Shown here: positions 52,350-64,000 of the stretch, piece by piece
How positions within the stretch are numbered: position 1 is the first letter of the stretch
How the letters are laid out: every line of letters begins with the position of its first letter
Source: Dimorphilus gyrociliatus
Lineage: Eukaryota > Animalia > Annelida
Direction: 5' to 3'
Length of the DNA: 64,000 nt
NCBI GenBank assembly: GCA_904063045.1
Contig: CAJFCJ010000012.1
Location: 1,178,001-1,242,000 of the forward strand
The notes under the pieces: model-generated
The model's input: only the letters and a program-made list of their open reading frames with translations
What the model was told of the DNA's origin: nothing
Databases searched by the model: none
Position numbers and translations under genes: made by a program

Positions 52350-53929
52350 ATGGAAAAACCGCATTAAACGTGCATCATAAAATTACTTTTGAATGGATAT
52401 TGCTTTTAGTTAAACAAGAATTATTAATAACTTTTCATATCTAAGAAATTGCCTCTTAAAGTCGTTTTAATCGGTTTGAGTTTAAACAGACATTTGTTGT
52501 TTGTAAGGATATTTTTCAAGATTGACTACCGAAAAGAAAACGTTTCACTCTTATCTTAAAACGTTTTCTCTATGTTCTCCTTAACCTTAATAAACATCTC
52601 TTTTTGTTAAACTCATAATCAAATGGAAAAGGTCAAGTTTTTTAAGAATAAAACATCAACTAAACAATTTGCTATTTTGATGTAATTTCGCATCTGTTCA
52701 GTACATTTTTTTAGTGTAAATATTGAGAAATTTCTCATAAAGAAAACATAAAAATTCCTTCTATGAACTTCGTTTTTTATTTCATTTTTTTTAATATAAA
52801 TATGTATACTGTGTATTGTATATGTATAATATTACAATTAAAAAAAGAAATAAAACTGCAATGTCGTTTTTAACCGCAAGATGACGCCCTAGTCTTTCAT
52901 TTAGGCTAGTTCGAATTATTAAATTCAATCATTTAGTGTGCTTTATTATCTACTTATTTACAATCCCTTTTTCTAATTTTGCATTAATTAATGAATTACA
53001 CAGTAATTGAAAATATATATATGAAATATTATTTATGGGATGATTATTATTAAATATCACCCAAAATCCAATACAAATAGGGGTGGGGGGTGGGGAATTT
53101 ATGTTATTAATATCTTTGCGAACAATAAGAATCCGATCGAGTAAGCCTCCTAAAGCTATCGAATGCAATTCTTAGAAACGCTAAAAAAAAGCTCAGGATT
53201 TATATTTTTTTTACTCTTTGGAGGAGACAAGAGGGAAGATATTTGTAAATCCCTACAGCTGTCTATCTTCTTAAGGGAGATTCGTTAGGAGTGTACATCT
53301 CCTTGTCGTAGTAAGGAATTAGAACTTAACTGTTCGCCTTAAGTACTTTACATGCCTAAAGTTATTTAATACCGTTGTAAAATTTGACAATTGCTAAAGT
53401 CGAACATTCAATTGTTTCATTTAGATAAATATCGTTTATATTTGAATGAAAAACATTAAACACATGTTCTTCTTTGTCCCTTCCATCCTTTGTTGTATAT
53501 ATTTAAATATATCTTTTATAATAAATTGCGTAATTCTTCGAAAATGCACAAAATTTCAATATGTTCATGTGAATTTTCATCTGAACTTTGTAAATATTCA
53601 TTATACTGTATATAATATATATATTTCATATTTCTTTTTTGAATAAAAATTAATGAACGCAAAAGATGTTAACTTGAGAAAAAAAGAAAAAGGAGTCAAG
53701 AGAAGAAAAAACTACAAACACAAAGAAGAAAAGGGAAAAAATAGCTGTTTAAAAAATATCAATAAAAATACAAACTTTTCCATAATTCATTATCCAATAA
53801 TGGATTATTAAGTTTATGTACGCAATATTTAATCAACGTTTTGTAGAAAAGGAAAAATTTAACCATAAACACGTACGCTAGTAATACCAATTTAATTATT
53901 GTGAGCATAATATTTGTACTAATTTTTAA

Positions 53930-55931
53930 TTAGCAGCAATTGTTATTTTTCGATCTCGGTAAATTACGTGATGGTGGCTTTCCATCAAGCACTATTTGGT
54001 CCCCGTAGCCGTGATCTTGTCCATATTCCATAGCGCTATCATTTTGTAGAATCTAGAAGAAAAATGATAAAAATTGTTTTTAAGGTAAACCCTTTGAAGA
54101 TCAACTTAGTGTATAATTAATATATACTTTAGTAACTAGACACCGAGCAGCTTCGTCAATATTAATATTTTCCTTTGCTGATGTTTCAAACCAATTTGCA
54201 AAACCTCTCTCTCTGCAATACTCTTCCATAGCGTCGTGATCGTTCACAATGCCATCTCTTGAATTTTGATCGCACTATTATATTGAAAACAATCATAAAT
54301 TAATTCTCAAGAAATCAGCTTTATTTCCTTATTATACTAATTAATTAATTAATTAATTAATTAAAAATCTATTTATTTAAGGTAATTCTAATATATTTAC
54401 TTTATTCGCCAAAAGAACGCATGGTAGAGGACTTCCATCTGGTAGCTGAACCTTTGAATCCAAATCACTTTTCCATTTTTGGACGGCTTCAAAAGTAGAT
54501 GCCCTAGTAATATCAAATACAACAAAAGCACCAACAGCTTCTTTATAATAAACTCTTGTCATATTCCCAAATCTCTCTTGACCTAGAAAAATGCACGCAA
54601 AGATTACGTAATCAAATGAAATAGAAAAAGAATTTTGTAAATAAATTGAAAATAAATTTCATAATTAAATTTTGATGAAAGTATAAACATAAATAATTTC
54701 AAGTAGTAGGTAAAAGATAGGAACAGCGAGGGGTGATACAAATGAAGAGTGGAAAGATAACACATGGAGAGAGAGGGGATTTGATCACGAGGACTATTGT
54801 AACCCGTGCGAATTGAACGTTTGTTAAACAGTATGCCTATGGTCAGATTGTTTATTTGTGGAAAACAATCGAATCTTATCTGTGAATATACGAAACAATA
54901 AGCTATCGAATGTTTTTAACAACTTGTATGCGTGTGTGGCGACTTTTATACAGTTTTTACATTTAAAAAAAAGACAAAAAGCATCTAAAAATGGAAACTT
55001 TAACGTTGAAAAAATAAATAAAACTATATTAATGCTACTTCTTTTTTTTGTATAAATGTTCATCGTATCTTGAATACCTTTTTAGCACAGCTACTTTCAA
55101 GTTAAAGAATAAATACTGTGAGTACATATTTATCAGTTTAGAAAGATAAGGGAACTTAGAAGGTACTTTTGACCTGTTAAACGCATATAAAGAAGGGAGG
55201 GAGATTGAAGAAGAAAAAAAAAAGATATTGTGTAATACCTGCTATATCCCACAATTGTAACCTAATAACGGTATCTGCATCCCAATTGATCACCTTCAGA
55301 GCAAAGTCTACACCGATCCAAATAGATTTAAGGAAGATTCTATTTAAAACTATAATAAATTCCCAGACTATTGATACTTTAAAGAATAGAATCTTTCAAA
55401 TAAAATATTAGTCTAAAAGAAACTAGAATATTATAAAAACTGTATCGATATTTAATTTCTTGGTTTTCTATATTATTGAAAAGGATACTGTAGCCCTGTA
55501 ATGTTGAGAGAAGAATTGGTGAACGTATCGTTTAATAATAGAAGTTTTCCCTGATCCCAATTCGCCTATAACTAGAACTTTGTATAAATGCTCCTTTTGT
55601 TCTCCATTTGTAAGTGTGGCAGTCTGTAAAAAAGAATAAGGAAATTAATCTCATAAAAATGTTTTAATGAATGCAGTGTATTAATAAGATGGATATTTGC
55701 CCTCCAGACTTATTTAATATACTAATAATATCAACAAGTATAAAAGATAAGCGTTTAATCGGTATTATCGTTCAAATTTTTTATCATTTGATTTAGCAGC
55801 CACATGAAGTGAGACAACTTTTTTTTTTACATAGCGTGCTTAGCAAACAAAGATGCTTCTAAGAACACGATTAAAAGTAAAGAATTTTTAACGGCTAAAG
55901 TGGAAGCAAGCGTAATTTCTCTACCTACCAT
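53930..55931 (-). CDS. RAB32: Rab32/38 family small GTPase (222 aa)
   Basis: Exons 55929-55931 (ATG|GTAGGT), 55489-55623, 55239-55317, 54401-54582, 54128-54274, 53930-54052. EHLYKVLVIGELGSGKTS, YRATIGVDFALK, WDIAGQERFGNMTRVYYK (Rab32/38 signature with I), NKCD, ETSAK, terminal CC prenylation motif. Confidence 0.94.
54338..54364. repeat. (TAAT)n tandem repeat in a Rab32 intron
   Basis: Directly visible. Confidence 0.9.
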
Positions 55932-57623: not shown

Positions 57624-60600
57624 ATGAATATATCGTTCAGAATGCTTCGCTTTATACCGATACATCATTTCCTAGGACAAATACCATTTGTGTTTTTAGC
57701 GATAACTATTTTAGGTAAGCTTCTCTATAATTAAATTAGTAATTATATAAATGCATTACAAATATTAATGATCAAACGAAGTCGAAAATCCTTCTTCATC
57801 AAATGCATTATAAACTACAAATGAATATTACATCTGCTTGAAATATGGACTATTGAATTTTCATTTCGCTGTAGCATTACTGACCATAGTCAAATACAAA
57901 TTATCGTTTTTTCTTTTTTAATATCAAAATCTCTTCATTTCTTTACCATAGAGGATTGGATTAGGGGAATTATCAATTGTAAACAATTAATAGCGTGACT
58001 GTTAGCAACTTGAAATTTGTCACTCGGAAAAAGTACTCAAGCCAGTTTTGTATAAGCTAATCCCCTTTGTAGAGGATGCAGTTCCCTCTCTCATGAAATA
58101 AGCACATATTTATTTACAGGAAACCTTAGGTCTCTTAGGATGGAACAGCTGGCTAAGTAGCAAGGACGGTACTTTTAAGTATAAATGCAAATTAATAGTA
58201 CTTTAACCTATTGGGATAGTTGAAAAGTGTCTAAAGCACTATTCAAGTTATAAAAATCTTAAATCATAGTATCTTTAAAGAGAGAGATTTGTAGACATTA
58301 TCAGTAAATCCTCAAAGAATATAAAAAAGAATCCGTACTAAATAAACTACGTAACGTCTATACACATTAGTATATTAACTATTTGTAATTAAATTTGTTA
58401 TTAGTTTATCCTTTATAGGAACAATTTTCTCATCTTACAAAAGCTGTAACCGTGCATGTGTTCACCTAATTTTCCTATAATTTTATCAATTTCTTATATT
58501 TTTAGAAAACTCTCTGCAGTACAATATATTTAATTTACATTGTACAGCAATAACATATAACTAAATTAACTTTTGTCATAAAACAGAACGCTTCCTTTTA
58601 TGTAATTTTTAACCTTCATTTATTCTTTGCTTTCAATTTTAGTCTCTTCCTGTATATAGTATACCTCTCCTTCCAGTCCGCCTTCTTCGCCCCTTTCATC
58701 CTCTTGCCTTTTTTTTGTAGATTACTAAAAGTAATAATATTTTTCTATGCGTATTTAATTTTGCAATTGATAAAATGTCTTGTTTGCTTTAAAATAATTC
58801 GTTAAGTTGAACGTTTAGCCTAAATGTAAAAGAGAAAGAGAAAGAGAAAGAAGATAACGATTGATTGCTTGATAGGATTGGTAGCACTCTATTATTTAAA
58901 TAATGTCTTTCCCTATTCTGTTTTTTTAAATTTTATTTTATGGTAGCTTTAAAAGAAAAGACAAAACTAAGTCGGCAAAGCCATCTTAAAGCGTCTAAAC
59001 TCGTTTGTCTTTACTATAAATAGCCAGTTGAAGTTGTAACCGTCCCATCAGTTATCATCCTTAAATTAAGCTAAAAATTCGATTAGAAAGGACTTGTTTC
59101 TTCTCAGAATATATATAAATTTATATACATATATAAATATATCTAAAATTTACATATTGAATAAAAAGAATAAAAATTACTGAGATTATTATCTTGAATT
59201 GTTCTAAAATTCCATTTGGGATATCAATATTCCTACTCCATACACCCAAACAACAAAAATCTTATTTTGCTGCCTGAAGGACCTTAGTTTAATTCAGCTG
59301 TCACCATATTTGTTTATACTGGCAATATTGAGAATAAATCTAGCGTTCCATTTTTATTGTTTTGTTTTTTTTTGTATTCTTGTTTTTTACATTTATTATA
59401 AAAGTTATATTAGACAAAAATTGTAAAATTAGCGTAGGAAACAAGGTATCTAATTTAAAGAGAGAAAAACAAATTACTGTAATCATTTCCATAGTCTTTA
59501 AACGATTTTATTTTCTATTAGAAAATGAAGAAAAACAAGATAAATTCCCATTTAAATATCCTTTTTTTTTTGGAGTATAGTTTTGCCATTCCAATTGTCT
59601 TTTCCTACTAATCTACAGGGCTTCGATGATGCCACCAAAGTACCATAAAATCGCACTGAGCCATTATATCAAAGTCATCTCAGGCCTTACTTGCTTTTCC
59701 TCCTTTTAATAGAAATTAAGTAACGTTCTAACAAATATAGCGCAAACGGTCGGAAAGAGTTACTTGACGCTCTTAGAATTTGTTGTAAATAGGCAATAGA
59801 AAAAAGCAAGAAAAACGCTCCATTCTCACCTCATCTTTTTATTTTGCAGCAACACGTACAGGTTCGGCTAAACAACCTCGTCCACACCTCAGAGTGACAA
59901 CCATTTTAGTAAGTTTGTTTGCGATTTTGCGGTTGTTTGACATTTTAGAGAGGCGTTTGACAACTGAGTCAGTTGATTGCTGTCGGAAGCTCGTGGCTTC
60001 CCTAAATGCCTTCTGGGCGTAAAAGAAAATATACGTATGTTAAATCAAGTGCGATGCTTTTTTCTATTCTATCATACCATTTTTGGGGCAGACTGCAATT
60101 GGGAATTTCCCGAAGTTTACAGACTAATTTTAGGCGCGTGATAAGATTTATTTCGTTTCTTCTTTACGATTTTTCTGCTACTTTTTTAAAGAAATAAATC
60201 ATCCTATTGACCTCGATCGTTTTTTACTATTCTGTTATAGAATCACCCTTATGTGATGCTCAAGCATGGTTCAACTGATGAATATATAGGTTTCATTCCT
60301 GACTTGTTGAGTAAATTGGCAGATAGGATGATGCTTGATTATACCTTAAAAGTTGCGCCAGACTCAAAATATGGTGTTAGAAATCGATTAACAGGGAATT
60401 GGGACGGTATGATAGGACAAGTTTACCGTAATGAAGCAGATGTTGCTGCATCTTCAATTTTCTATACAAAACAAAGGGACAATTATGTTGATTTTACAAT
60501 ACCATTTTTAAATGTTTCGGCAAGCATAATATATAAAAAGTCCGAATACGCTCAAAAGATAAGAATAACTAAAGCCAGTGACCTATTAAACCAAGACTTT

Positions 60601-61125
60601 TATAAGTTTGGAACTTTGTCACGGGGACCAATAAAAATTGCTTTCAAACGGACCAATAACTCCGTCTATAGGGATTTGTGGAGAAAAATGGATAGGTTTT
60701 ATCCCCATGTATTTTATGCTACCAACGACGATGCTTTACAGAGAGTTCGCAGCGATCCACGTTATGCTTTTATCCTGCCGAAACCAATAGCTGATTATAT
60801 AGTTGGTAGGAAACCTTGCGAGCTATTACAAGCCGATTCATTTCTACTTAATCAACGATATTGTCTGGTCTTGAAAGAGAACAGTACATATTTGTGGCGC
60901 TTTAATTATCATTTGAAAGAATTAACTAAAAATGGTTTTCTAGCATCGATGTATAGAAAATGGTGGATAAATTCGGCCGAATGTTCACACCATACTGCAG
61001 GTGGCAGTAGTAGTTTCAGTGCTGAAGTTGGCAATGGAACAGGAGTATCAAAATGTAGCTTGTACTTCAGAAAAGTCTTCATTATCCTTATTTTACATTT
61101 GTTTACTTTCCATATACATATATGA
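57624..61125 (+). CDS. Secreted/GPI-anchored iGluR-type ligand-binding domain protein (S1-S2 fused; no ATD, no M1-M3 pore), 344 aa
   Basis: Exons 57624-57714 (MNISFRMLRFIPIHHFLGQIPFVFLAITIL, signal-like; AG|GTAAGC), 59850-59908 (..PHLRVTTIL|GTAAGT), 60241-61125 (NHPYVM..YIGFIPDLL..KYG..WDGMIGQV..ADVA..R..VDFTIPF..IIYKK then directly S2: SDLLNQ..FGTL..LWRKM..YAFI..KPCEL..Y..KELTKNGFL..KWW..EC). Phases 1 and 0 match. Confidence 0.87.
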
Positions 61126-62528
61126 ATTTTACTGCTTACTTATTCTCAAATTTAATAAAAGCCATTTCTTTTTGTCTATGCTATAGATACTGCAAATGAA
61201 CCATAAAAACCTAAACATACTGTACTGTATAAATAATTATTATAAAATCGAGTAGGCCTAGGTATATTGATATATAAATGTATAATAACAATATTAATAA
61301 AGATATATCAAGTTCAAATCGACAAACTACCCTACTAACCAATATGCATGTTAATGCGAATACATTTCTACAAGTGGAGAATCTGAGGCATCTGTATTTA
61401 CAAAAAGGAATGAGATTGCATGAAATTCTTTATCCCAGTTTTCATTACGTTTCTTTTTCTTTGATTTTCGATAGAAAGTTTGTTGGGAGTTACAAAAACA
61501 GCTGATAAGTACAGGTGCTAGAGGGAATATTAGATATTTAGTAAGTTAACATTATATTTAGTTAGGAATGGACCAATGCCTAAAATATAGATGGTAGAAT
61601 GTTAAAAAAATCATCCGTTAAGAGATTAGATATTGGGTTTATTCTTAAATACATTAAAAAATAAAAATGGAGCATGTAACACTGACAATATTACTGTTAC
61701 TCAATAGTTAATGGGTTACAATGTGCTATTAAGATATATAAAATATTTAAAGGAAGTAACCGAAAATGGTAATTACACCTCTCGTTGGAAGAAGAGGAAA
61801 TAATCATAATCTCATGGGACCTGTAAATGCATAAGTTAAATTAAGAGAAAACTGAAGAAGCTCATTGTCTATTAAGTGAACTTTTTTCAGTCTGTTCCTA
61901 TCTTGAGTTTGAAGAGCTTCTTAAAGGTTAAATAAATAACAAATTTATATAAGGATTATTCGATAATTTACGGCCAAAATGATTTTAAAAGTTCAATAAC
62001 TTTATGTTGAATTCTATAGAATGCAAATTGTTTTGTATTTTTAACGTATAAATTCCATAAAGTCGATTATCAAGTTGAAATGCAAACTTTATTAGTATAG
62101 AGATCTAACGTGAAGTATGTAAACTTTCTTTTTGCGGCAGCAGCATCTAAAGAAAAACAATAATTTTTTTCCATCGCCTTTTTTCATATTATTGTTGGAA
62201 AAAAAACTTCCAAAACTACGACTTTTTATTAAGAGAACTGGTGAGAATACAACCGTTAAATCCTGGGGGAGCGATAAAAGCGGCCAGTAATACAACGGAA
62301 TAAATCGCCGTGTCATACTAACTGCATTTGGTAACCATGGACTTTAAAAGATCTTTTAAATTTTAGATAATATAATCGGAAGTTTCCTGGTTTAAGTTTT
62401 TATTATACAATTTTTATTAAACGTTAAACCAACTATTTTTTTGTATATACAAATACAAAATGCACCATTTTAATAACTAGCAAGGAAAACGTGTATCACA
62501 GAAAAATACGTTATAAATTTAATTCTTC

Positions 62529-63943
62529 TTAAACGTTGCTGTCCAAATCTTCAGATTGTTCTCTTATAGCTAATTGAGGTGATACTGGGACAGCTGATGC
62601 GGGACTTGTAAAAAATGCCATTCGTTCTCTGAAGAATAATATTAATTACTTGATAACTATTGAAATTTTGTATATTCATCAATATTACTTAAATAATGCA
62701 GCGTTAGGTTCCTTTTGAGCTCTTCTTAACTTATTTATTTCGTGGGTTGCCTTTTTTAATTTCTTTTCGGCCAGATCTTCTACTTTCGAATCTTTGGTAC
62801 AAGATTTTTCTCTCTCATTCTAATGATTTAATTAAGAGAATCGTTAGTAAAATTTTACAAATATTTATGATCATACCAATTTTTCTGCTCTATTTAGAAT
62901 TGATTGGCATCCATCATCTCTCATCCATTCAGGTAATTCACCTTCTTTACCCCGTTTAATCTTTTCTAACTCCTCTTTGACTAGAGTTAATCGAAGAATA
63001 TCTTCTTCTTCCTGCTCAACTCTCTGTTTGGAAGCCTGAAGCGCCAATTCCAAATCCAAAGAGGTAGGGGCCTGAGTTGTTGATTTTGCCTTCTTAACGT
63101 TCACAATTGGGGCTTTAGATAGTCGAATACTTCTTCTTTCAGATGCATAGCGTTGAAAAGGTGATTTTCTTTGATATTTTGGGAGAGTTGAATCGCTATC
63201 ACTTCTGTTTAACTGAAAAAAAATTATCCAATGTATATGCGGCGCCATCTATGTATTTAATAGGATACTAACTCTGTATATATTATGATCGTCGAAGTTC
63301 AAATCGGAATGAGCAGGAGAAAATGTTTTTGATCGTCGTATGAGTTTAGCATCTTCGGAAGCTGTTACCATCAATTTAGATGGAGGATTGCAAACGGCTG
63401 CTTCAGTATTGGTTTCAGCGTCTCGTTTCACTAGTCTTACAGTATCACATGGCGATAATTCTTCTTCAATCGCATATGTTTCCTCCTCAATCTCCAAAGG
63501 TGAACTCTCTCGAGTATCGACAAGATTTTGAACAGAACTTGGATCAAGATTCCTCGACAGTGTAGAAGGCTGAGAGGCAATAATTGTTGATTCGTCACTA
63601 CTCTCTTCACAAACACTTGATCCTCGAGTAAGTTCACGTGCTCTATGAGAATATTGATAAGTTTTAAAGAATAAAAAAACCTGAAATGAAACCCTTTACA
63701 AGAGGGTATTCATCAACGAGTATAGGAACTATTTTAGGAATGGTGCCACATACAATACTCAAATTCTAAAGGCCTATTATAAAGTTTATTGACATAGGGC
63801 GTCTTTATAATGTGAATTTGAATATTAGGATATAAAACCATTTTAGTATTAAAAAATATGACTCACTTTGAATTTCGTGGAGATTCAATTCGTAATCTGT
63901 GATCTGATGTGTCGAGTAGTTCTTTAACTTTATCGGCTCCTTC
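62529..63943 (-). CDS. KIBRA: KIBRA/WWC family protein, C-terminal exons (5' part beyond the right edge)
   Basis: Exons 63867-63943, 63273-63642, 62877-63212, 62689-62819, 62529-62628, all in phase. Hallmarks EESSDESTII, RRSKTFSP, RLNRSDSDST, SERRSIR, TSLDLELALQA, ELPEWM, FKERMAFFT. Confidence 0.92.
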
Positions 63944-64000
63944 CTACAATTAGAAATTATTTTCAGAATGTTTTCACAAATTCAAGTACTCAATTTTTTA

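Follow-up and report, generated by a model that had tools for sequence, protein, structure and literature searches.

Hand-made S1S2 constructs have served for 25 years in the study of the ligand-binding domains (LBDs) of ionotropic glutamate receptors (iGluRs), and whether animals also make such a protein is the question raised by a locus of the annelid Dimorphilus gyrociliatus, at positions 57624–61125 (+ strand) of a 64,000-nucleotide stretch of contig CAJFCJ010000012.1 (assembly GCA_904063045.1, positions 1,178,001 to 1,242,000; hereafter the window). An earlier note on this DNA, made from its letters without database searches, had read the locus as a channel-less, secreted and probably glycosylphosphatidylinositol (GPI)-anchored S1–S2 fusion. 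The 344-residue translation of the gene matches the database entry DgyrCDS8816 exactly. As analyzed here, DgyrCDS8816 is a natural S1–S2 fusion without an amino-terminal domain (ATD) or pore, and its domain, fold, and disulfide place it in the iGluR superfamily. Its gene is real, with expression, splicing at the predicted sites, and purifying selection all in evidence, and the protein is very probably a channel-less binding domain, either held at the cell surface or secreted.

The receptor-like domain is carried by exon 3, whose 294 codons span the start of S1 through the stop codon. Its translation matched the Pfam families Lig_chan-Glu_bd (2.7e-27, 95.6 bits; cut-off 30) and SBP_bac_3 (4.1e-16, 59.4 bits; cut-off 26.4), and the pore family Lig_chan gave no match in exon 3 even at E<=1. 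Best matches in the PDB were all iGluR cores, namely the engineered S1S2 constructs of GluA4, GluA2, and GluA3 and Drosophila KaiR1D (E ~1e-38). Exon 3 aligned to the engineered cores as a single colinear stretch across the junction, whereas alignment to full-length receptors broke into two stretches. At the junction itself (60538–60582, within exon 3), the sequence runs from ..IYKK through the linker SEYAQKIRITKAS to DLL.., and at the corresponding profile position DgyrCDS8816 has an insert of 0 residues as compared to 77–199 in 79 pore-bearing relatives. Since tblastn with the DgyrCDS8816 protein found no other iGluR-like exon in the 64-kb window, the window holds no ATD, no M1–M3, and no hidden pore exons. 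Hydropathy analysis identified only two hydrophobic segments, at residues ~15–35 and 323–344, with a top 15-residue value of 1.48 between them. Neither of the marks of a channel subunit, a pore module M1-M2-M3 with the SYTANLAAF gate or a full M4 followed by a cytosolic C-terminal domain, was found in the protein. Both marks of an iGluR superfamily LBD were present, i.e., the S1 family together with a type-3 solute-binding protein (SBP) match, and a clamshell fold with the lobe-2 disulfide. The cysteines of this disulfide, C243 and C298 (equivalent to GluA2 C718–C773), are invariant in 40/40 aligned family members. Pfam, PDB alignment, tblastn, and hydropathy therefore agree with the earlier note that S1 passes straight into S2 within one exon, with no ATD and no M1–M3.

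To compare the fold with known receptors, an AF2 model of DgyrCDS8816 was built on a 40-sequence alignment, a single-sequence version (pLDDT 38) being discarded. The model had a mean pLDDT of 88.4, exceeding 90 over residues 41–300, and matched the GluA2 S1S2J cores with a TM score of 0.93 and an rmsd of 1.7–1.9 Å over ~260 residues at 32% identity; together with the colinear alignment, this bears out the proposed likeness of the layout to engineered GluA2 S1S2. Foldseek alignments to full-length receptors extended to residue ~340 of DgyrCDS8816, and bacterial clusters reached TM scores of only 0.54–0.59. The structure search also returned a second S1–S2 fusion protein from the D. gyrociliatus genome, DgyrCDS1714 (AlphaFold DB A0A7I8V891).

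The gene model consists of three exons (Table 1) joined in frame over 1035 nt to encode 344 residues and a stop, with GT..AG at both introns. The sequence statements of the earlier note all proved correct at the positions it gave. RNA evidence consisted of assembled contigs from a single 2017 run, produced by a study separate from the genome project. One transcript contig covered 57585–57712 and was spliced on to exon 2, with the intron 1 joint falling at 57712/57714 to 59848/59850, and a 1009-nt contig extended without a break from the exon 2 joint, past 60241 and across exon 3, as far as 61188. The predicted joints 57714|59850 and 59908|60241 were thus seen spliced as expected in transcript contigs, and the S1–S2 junction was seen as continuous exon. 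Contig depth was ~47–76 on the exons versus 0–5 in the introns, and no onward splicing past exon 3 was observed in contigs reaching 61188. At the rate at which stop codons occur in the flanking introns, a run of 294 codons would stay open by chance with a probability of ~1e-9.

A syntenic ortholog was identified in a related species (locus L001), with the same structure in three independently assembled runs, and shares with DgyrCDS8816 the three exons, splice sites, S1–S2 junction, and hydrophobic end. Its neighbors, both encoded on the opposite strand, are a Ras-family exon on the upstream side and a WWC1-like gene on the downstream side. The two genes are 78% identical in amino acids and 79% in DNA, with identities of 85, 89, and 63% at the three codon positions. 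The ratio dN/dS was 0.161 overall (bootstrap 0.103–0.234) and 0.111 for the domain (0.068–0.170), and by region ranged from 0.05 for S1 and 0.18 for S2 to 0.62 for the tail. The 20-residue product of exon 2 is identical at 19/20 positions between the two species, as compared to only ~37% for the signal-peptide exon 1; judged from this pair, the start of the mature protein appears unusually constrained. Beyond Dimorphilus, the junction also lies inside one exon in Capitella, and in P0003, the closest non-Dimorphilus homolog, the whole domain and tail form a single 873-nt open reading frame (ORF). The earlier note had called for a search for orthologs with the same junction; a syntenic ortholog and annelid homologs of this kind exist.

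To determine how widespread this architecture is, an exhaustive HMMER search was performed against 1.84 billion cluster representatives. It returned 3167 relatives, and the best 150 were sorted by the insert at the junction: 79 clusters were pore-bearing, 42 were complete natural S1–S2 fusions, 22 were fusions starting mid-S1, and six were fragments too short to sort, which were omitted from trees. The remaining entry, P0028, is a crystallography S1S2 construct with a Gly-Thr linker and was excluded; synthetic sequences do occur in the protein library and need screening out of counts of natural fusions. Natural fusions, complete or starting mid-S1, thus made up 64/150 of the best clusters. The 22 mid-S1 entries begin at a profile position corresponding to an exon boundary in Capitella and are most likely last-exon ORFs. 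Named fusions came from Capitella teleta (three genes), Helobdella robusta, Paralvinella palmiformis (two genes), and Owenia fusiformis, and, outside annelids, from the mite Sarcoptes scabiei and the fly Bradysia coprophila; they are annotated as "hypothetical" or loosely as "kainate-like". Word-indexed protein searches with exon 3 returned only DgyrCDS8816 itself and one ortholog, a Capitella query yielded one extra named Paralvinella paralog, and a word-indexed search with an alignment query added nothing among the 8000 candidates at which it saturated.

Phylogenetic analysis of 143 domains (LG+C20 PMSF) placed DgyrCDS8816 and 30 other fusion clusters in one clade of 31 (SH-aLRT 97), whose named members are all annelids (Capitella, Helobdella, Paralvinella); an ESM-Atlas cluster of 147 such proteins is likewise commonest in Annelida. 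Parsimony gave ~8–11 label changes for pore loss, and the starred branches of the tree force at least two, although monophyly of the 64 fusions is not rejected by an approximately unbiased (AU) test (p 0.31). Nearest pore-bearing neighbors of the fusion groups in the tree are ATD-less receptors of 465–496 residues (P0055, P0072, and P0127), from the annelid Owenia, the nemertean Tubulanus, and the hemichordate Ptychodera, and such ATD-less, pore-bearing iGluRs may represent the ancestral state of the fusions. Because DgyrCDS8816 carries the iGluR-specific S1 Pfam family and the receptor disulfide and has animal AMPA/kainate-type domains as its nearest relatives, it most likely derived from an AMPA/kainate-like receptor by clean loss of the segment from pre-M1 through M3.

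Conservation of the ligand pocket was examined at the positions that contact glutamate in GluA2. The clade of 31 retains Arg485 in 31/31 clusters, as do the pore-bearing relatives in 79/79. In contrast, Glu705 is replaced by Pro in 31/31 (Glu in 70/79 pore-bearing clusters), Ser654 and Thr655 are each hydrophobic in 31/31 (Ser in 71/79 and Thr in 70/79), and Thr480 is aromatic or hydrophobic in 31/31 (Thr in 70/79). DgyrCDS8816 conforms to this pattern, with R129 retained, Thr480 changed to Phe, Ser654-Thr655 to Pro-Ile (P180/I181), and Glu705 to Pro (P230). It thereby keeps only the arginine of the glutamate-binding set (Arg485, Thr480, Ser654/Thr655, Glu705) while showing the full signature of the annelid clade: no insert, Arg485, Pro705, hydrophobic 654/655, and a position inside the clade. 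The same arginine is kept by acid-sensing variant Ionotropic Receptors (IRs). Such uniformity across the clade points to an ancient and conserved rewiring of the pocket rather than decay. Since the contacts for the alpha-amino group and the distal carboxylate are gone, the ligand is presumably neither glutamate nor another alpha-amino acid; a non-amino-acid carboxylate is a proposal to which the pocket residues lend about even chances. Most other fusion groups have a canonical pocket, with T480 in 28/33, T655 in 26/33, and E705 in 27/33 (plus five with Asp); S654 is present in only 15/33.

Among these, a separate fusion group (P0016, P0021, P0037, P0065, P0067, P0097, P0140, and P0147) retains the full glutamate-contact set of Thr, Arg, Ser-Thr, and Glu, with signal peptides and no hydrophobic tail. 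One member is from Bradysia coprophila and many are from environmental transcript-sized contigs. These proteins are the better candidates for a true soluble glutamate-binding protein.

The C terminus of DgyrCDS8816 ends as the earlier note had described, in a hydrophobic tail of 16 residues followed directly by the stop codon, with no cytosolic residues. In alignment with pore-bearing relatives, this run sits exactly at the start of M4. Because of this position, and because Foldseek alignments to full-length receptors run into it, the tail reads historically as a shortened M4. Several of its traits resemble a GPI signal: it is short, no cytosolic residues follow it, small residues lie ~10 positions upstream, and it evolves fast yet remains hydrophobic. 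The layout, in which a 10-residue spacer separates candidate omega sites (N315/G316/G318) from a hydrophobic end of 16 residues, is similar in the ortholog, whose hydrophobic end is 13 residues long, and in many family members; 24/31 clade clusters end in a hydrophobic 12-mer. On this pattern, a GPI anchor on DgyrCDS8816 is somewhat favored.

The explanation that best accounts for these observations, and that we consider reasonably probable as a whole, is a functional gene for an extracellular, membrane-tethered, iGluR-type bilobed protein that consists of the LBD only, is GPI-tethered, and binds an anionic ligand other than an amino acid. The N-terminal signal would route DgyrCDS8816 into the secretory pathway, where the C243–C298 disulfide and N-glycan sites would be used, and the C-terminal hydrophobic tail would most likely be swapped for a GPI anchor, placing the protein on the outer cell face. 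There the clamshell would close on an anionic ligand through Arg129. Because Thr480, Ser654-Thr655, and Glu705 have given way to Phe, Pro-Ile, and Pro, the ligand would probably be an anionic, largely hydrophobic small molecule (e.g., an organic or fatty acid). Because there is no pore, the only output would be through sequestration of the ligand, its presentation at the cell surface, or docking to a partner, as expected of a tethered co-receptor or buffer, much as substrate-binding proteins do for their membrane partners.

Several points weigh against this explanation. Secretion and anchoring of DgyrCDS8816 are predicted from sequence pattern; the tail holds three His, and AF2 models a helix at residues 321–343, making a short transmembrane anchor possible. 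An invariant Pro and a hydrophobic pocket could instead belong to a ligand-free domain with a purely structural or adhesive role. Within its clade, the Dimorphilus pair has a long branch (0.78), and contig assemblies from one run lose rare isoforms. The modeled helix also bears on a distinct proposal, that DgyrCDS8816 is a type I membrane protein held by the shortened M4 and docking to pore-forming iGluR or IR subunits, where it would supply an additional or replacement ligand-binding module as a split or auxiliary receptor subunit. Alignment of the tail with the M4 start and the extension of structural alignments into it are consistent with this, as is the packing of M4 against the M1/M3 of the neighboring subunit in iGluR tetramers. 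However, a hydrophobic run of 16 residues (13 in the ortholog) without cytosolic residues behind it is short for a stable span, and the poor conservation of the tail (dN/dS 0.62) is unlike that of a specific helix–helix interface, leaving such a subunit unlikely. Even less support is found for a secreted, soluble protein acting as a decoy or buffer for an amino-acid transmitter such as glutamate, an iGluR counterpart of the molluscan and annelid acetylcholine-binding protein (AChBP) in which the tail is irrelevant or cleaved. The architecture does equal that of the soluble engineered S1S2 core, and other fusion groups retain the full glutamate-contact set, some of them without a tail (the Bradysia protein and relatives). 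Replacement of Glu705 (alpha-amino contact) and Ser654/Thr655 (distal carboxylate) in DgyrCDS8816 and all 31 clade clusters nonetheless makes a decoy quite unlikely, and the hydrophobic end in the ortholog and 24/31 clade members argues for tethering. The suggestion of the earlier note that the protein might serve as a decoy for a neurotransmitter, if glutamate is meant, is accordingly unlikely for this clade, in which the alpha-amino and gamma-carboxylate contacts are replaced in 31/31 clusters.

Explanations that deny a functional animal gene fare considerably worse. Receptor surveys routinely class pore-less sequences as fragments (e.g., PMC6307864), and DgyrCDS8816 might by that standard be what is left of a decaying gene, an artifact of assembly, or a piece of a full-length receptor gene that was wrongly annotated. 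Against this stand an open frame expected by chance at ~1e-9, a dN/dS of 0.16, spliced transcripts, the same structure in three independent assemblies of a related species, no receptor exons elsewhere in the window, and a junction that in Capitella and another genome is contained in one exon or ORF; a fragment is therefore very improbable. A bacterial periplasmic binding-protein gene, acquired by contamination or horizontal transfer, would share its fold with SBP_bac_3, and the automatic name "ABC-type amino acid transport substrate-binding protein" has been given to several metagenome copies. However, the two spliceosomal introns are spliced out of the transcripts, the gene keeps synteny with Ras-family and WWC1-like animal genes, and animal AMPA/kainate domains match best in both sequence and structure, bacterial clusters matching far more loosely, such that a bacterial source is exceedingly improbable. 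Pseudogene, assembly deletion, truncated isoform, and bacterial origin were accordingly rejected for DgyrCDS8816 on the basis of open frame, selection, spliced contigs, ortholog, introns, and synteny. The scenarios that the earlier note had listed as fatal to its reading (assembly deletion, onward splicing, no expression, and bacterial contamination) each fail.

Table 1. Features of the DgyrCDS8816 gene and its product, in window coordinates
Feature	Position	Strand	Description
Exon 1	57624..57714	+	Start codon and most of a signal-peptide-like N-terminus (hydrophobic core ~residues 15-35); in-frame model, hydropathy; same GT donor in ortholog exon
Intron 1	57715..59849	+	2135 nt, GT..AG; holds conserved island 58963-59085 (88% identical to the relative, ~78% around it)
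Exon 2	59850..59908	+	Probable signal-peptidase region and first beta-strand of lobe D1 (..LRVTTIL); spliced on both sides in transcript contigs
Intron 2	59909..60240	+	332 nt, GT..AG; joint 59908|60241, shorter side 61 nt, depth 62.6
Exon 3	60241..61125	+	Start of S1 through stop codon
S1 segment	60241..60540	+	Residues 51-150; Y94, S122, F124, R129 (60475-60477); Pfam, alignment to GluA4 S1S2
S1-S2 linker	60541..60579	+	13 residues (SEYAQKIRITKAS), mid-exon and mid-contig; replaces pre-M1, M1, M2 pore loop, M3, and SYTANLAAF gate
S2 segment	60580..60984	+	Residues 164-298; P180/I181 for Ser-Thr, P230 for Glu705, disulfide pair C243/C298
Post-domain spacer	60985..61074	+	Residues 299-328, small-residue-rich, NGT sequon; candidate GPI omega sites N315/G316/G318; pLDDT ~50
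Hydrophobic tail	61075..61125	+	16 residues, then stop; at M4 position of full receptors; hydropathy, alignment with pore-bearing relatives
AATAAA signal and transcript end	61154-61159; contig end 61188	+	End 29 nt beyond AATAAA at 61154

Within intron 1, an island (58963–59085; L001 5239–5362) is 88% identical to the relative, whereas the introns around it, and even the exons, reach ~75–80%. A CTATAAATAG motif within the island is present in Dimorphilus only. The island matches nothing in Rfam, gives no signal of RNA folding (z -1.4), and lacks transcript depth, and could be a regulatory element. Rfam and repeat scans over 56–62.5 kb of the window found nothing relevant. Upstream, at ~53800–55600 on the minus strand, lies a Ras-family small GTPase gene whose exon ORFs carry GSGKTSIIKRYVHQ.. 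and ..LQLWDIAG motifs that look Rab32/38-like; the gene is syntenic with a Pfam Ras match at L001. Downstream, conserved coding ORFs on the minus strand (61838–63946, with 62871–63497 among them; L001 8397–12593) run past the window end. At L001, WWC1 and WW domains are encoded by the ORFs next upstream, and the minus-strand ORFs of the window are therefore probably the 3' end of a KIBRA/WWC-like gene.

Placed beside known systems, DgyrCDS8816 most resembles the engineered S1S2 cores of GluA2, GluA3, GluA4, and KaiR1D (1ftj, 3fas, 5dtb), with which it shares the order of S1, short linker, and S2 and the absence of a pore. Unlike these, it is natural, spliced, and under selection, has a 13-residue linker rather than a Gly-Thr dipeptide, bears a signal-peptide-like N-terminus and a hydrophobic tail, and has four glutamate-contacting positions replaced. 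AChBP, known from molluscs and Capitella, is a natural LBD of a ligand-gated channel family without the channel, and the resemblance is in concept only: AChBP has the unrelated Cys-loop fold and is a soluble secreted pentamer with its transmitter site kept, whereas the pocket of DgyrCDS8816 is altered and the protein, by its sequence, apparently tethered. Stand-alone bilobed binding proteins that are sometimes lipid-tethered and work via a membrane partner are also found among the bacterial type-3 SBPs (SBP_bac_3; lipid-anchored in Gram-positives). However, neither a prokaryotic context nor bacterial nearest relatives were found for DgyrCDS8816, which came secondarily from animal receptors and carries, besides the receptor disulfide and a tail at the M4 position, the S1 family specific to iGluRs. 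ATD-less iGluRs (Owenia, Tubulanus, Ptychodera) and vertebrate kainate-binding proteins likewise do without an amino-terminal domain, but they retain a 100–125-residue M1–M3 insert and a full M4. The variant IRs of protostomes have divergent iGluR LBDs without some of the glutamate-contacting residues (PMC2924276). A divergent pocket is thus common to IRs and DgyrCDS8816, while IRs retain M1–M3 and M4 as channels and DgyrCDS8816 has no channel domain.

The earlier note knew of no characterized animal example, and a full-text literature search, with subscription journals outside its coverage, indeed found no description of channel-less, LBD-only iGluR proteins. The protein is nevertheless not a one-off, as the fusion family was already present in databases as "hypothetical" proteins. 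A major receptor survey discarded sequences without SYTANLAAF (PMC6307864), and such a filter would explain why the fusions were overlooked. The annelid fusion family is apparently an undescribed architectural variant of the iGluR superfamily.

Earlier cases of a domain separable from its pore are AChBP for the Cys-loop receptors and Hv1 and the voltage-sensing phosphatases (Hv1/VSP) for voltage sensors; a natural, conserved S1–S2 family shows that the iGluR LBD is also evolutionarily separable from the pore. Fusion proteins of this kind are naturally of soluble-domain size, making them ready subjects for ligand screening and crystallography, and the invariant Arg-plus-Pro pocket provides a testable ligand hypothesis. 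Because surveys that require SYTANLAAF have screened such proteins out, the chemosensory or signaling repertoire of annelids is probably under-counted, and that of mites and flies may be likewise. We further propose, as a speculation that we would ourselves call doubtful, that the annelid clade with the Arg/Pro pocket is an unrecognized surface chemoreceptor component: a clamshell, tethered by GPI or an M4 stub, that would capture an environmental or metabolic non-amino-acid carboxylate and then signal through docking onto a separate membrane partner (a pore-forming iGluR or IR, or another receptor). If true, the annelid clade would constitute a ligand-gated receptor that is naturally "split", with animals having re-invented the bacterial logic of binding protein plus transducer.

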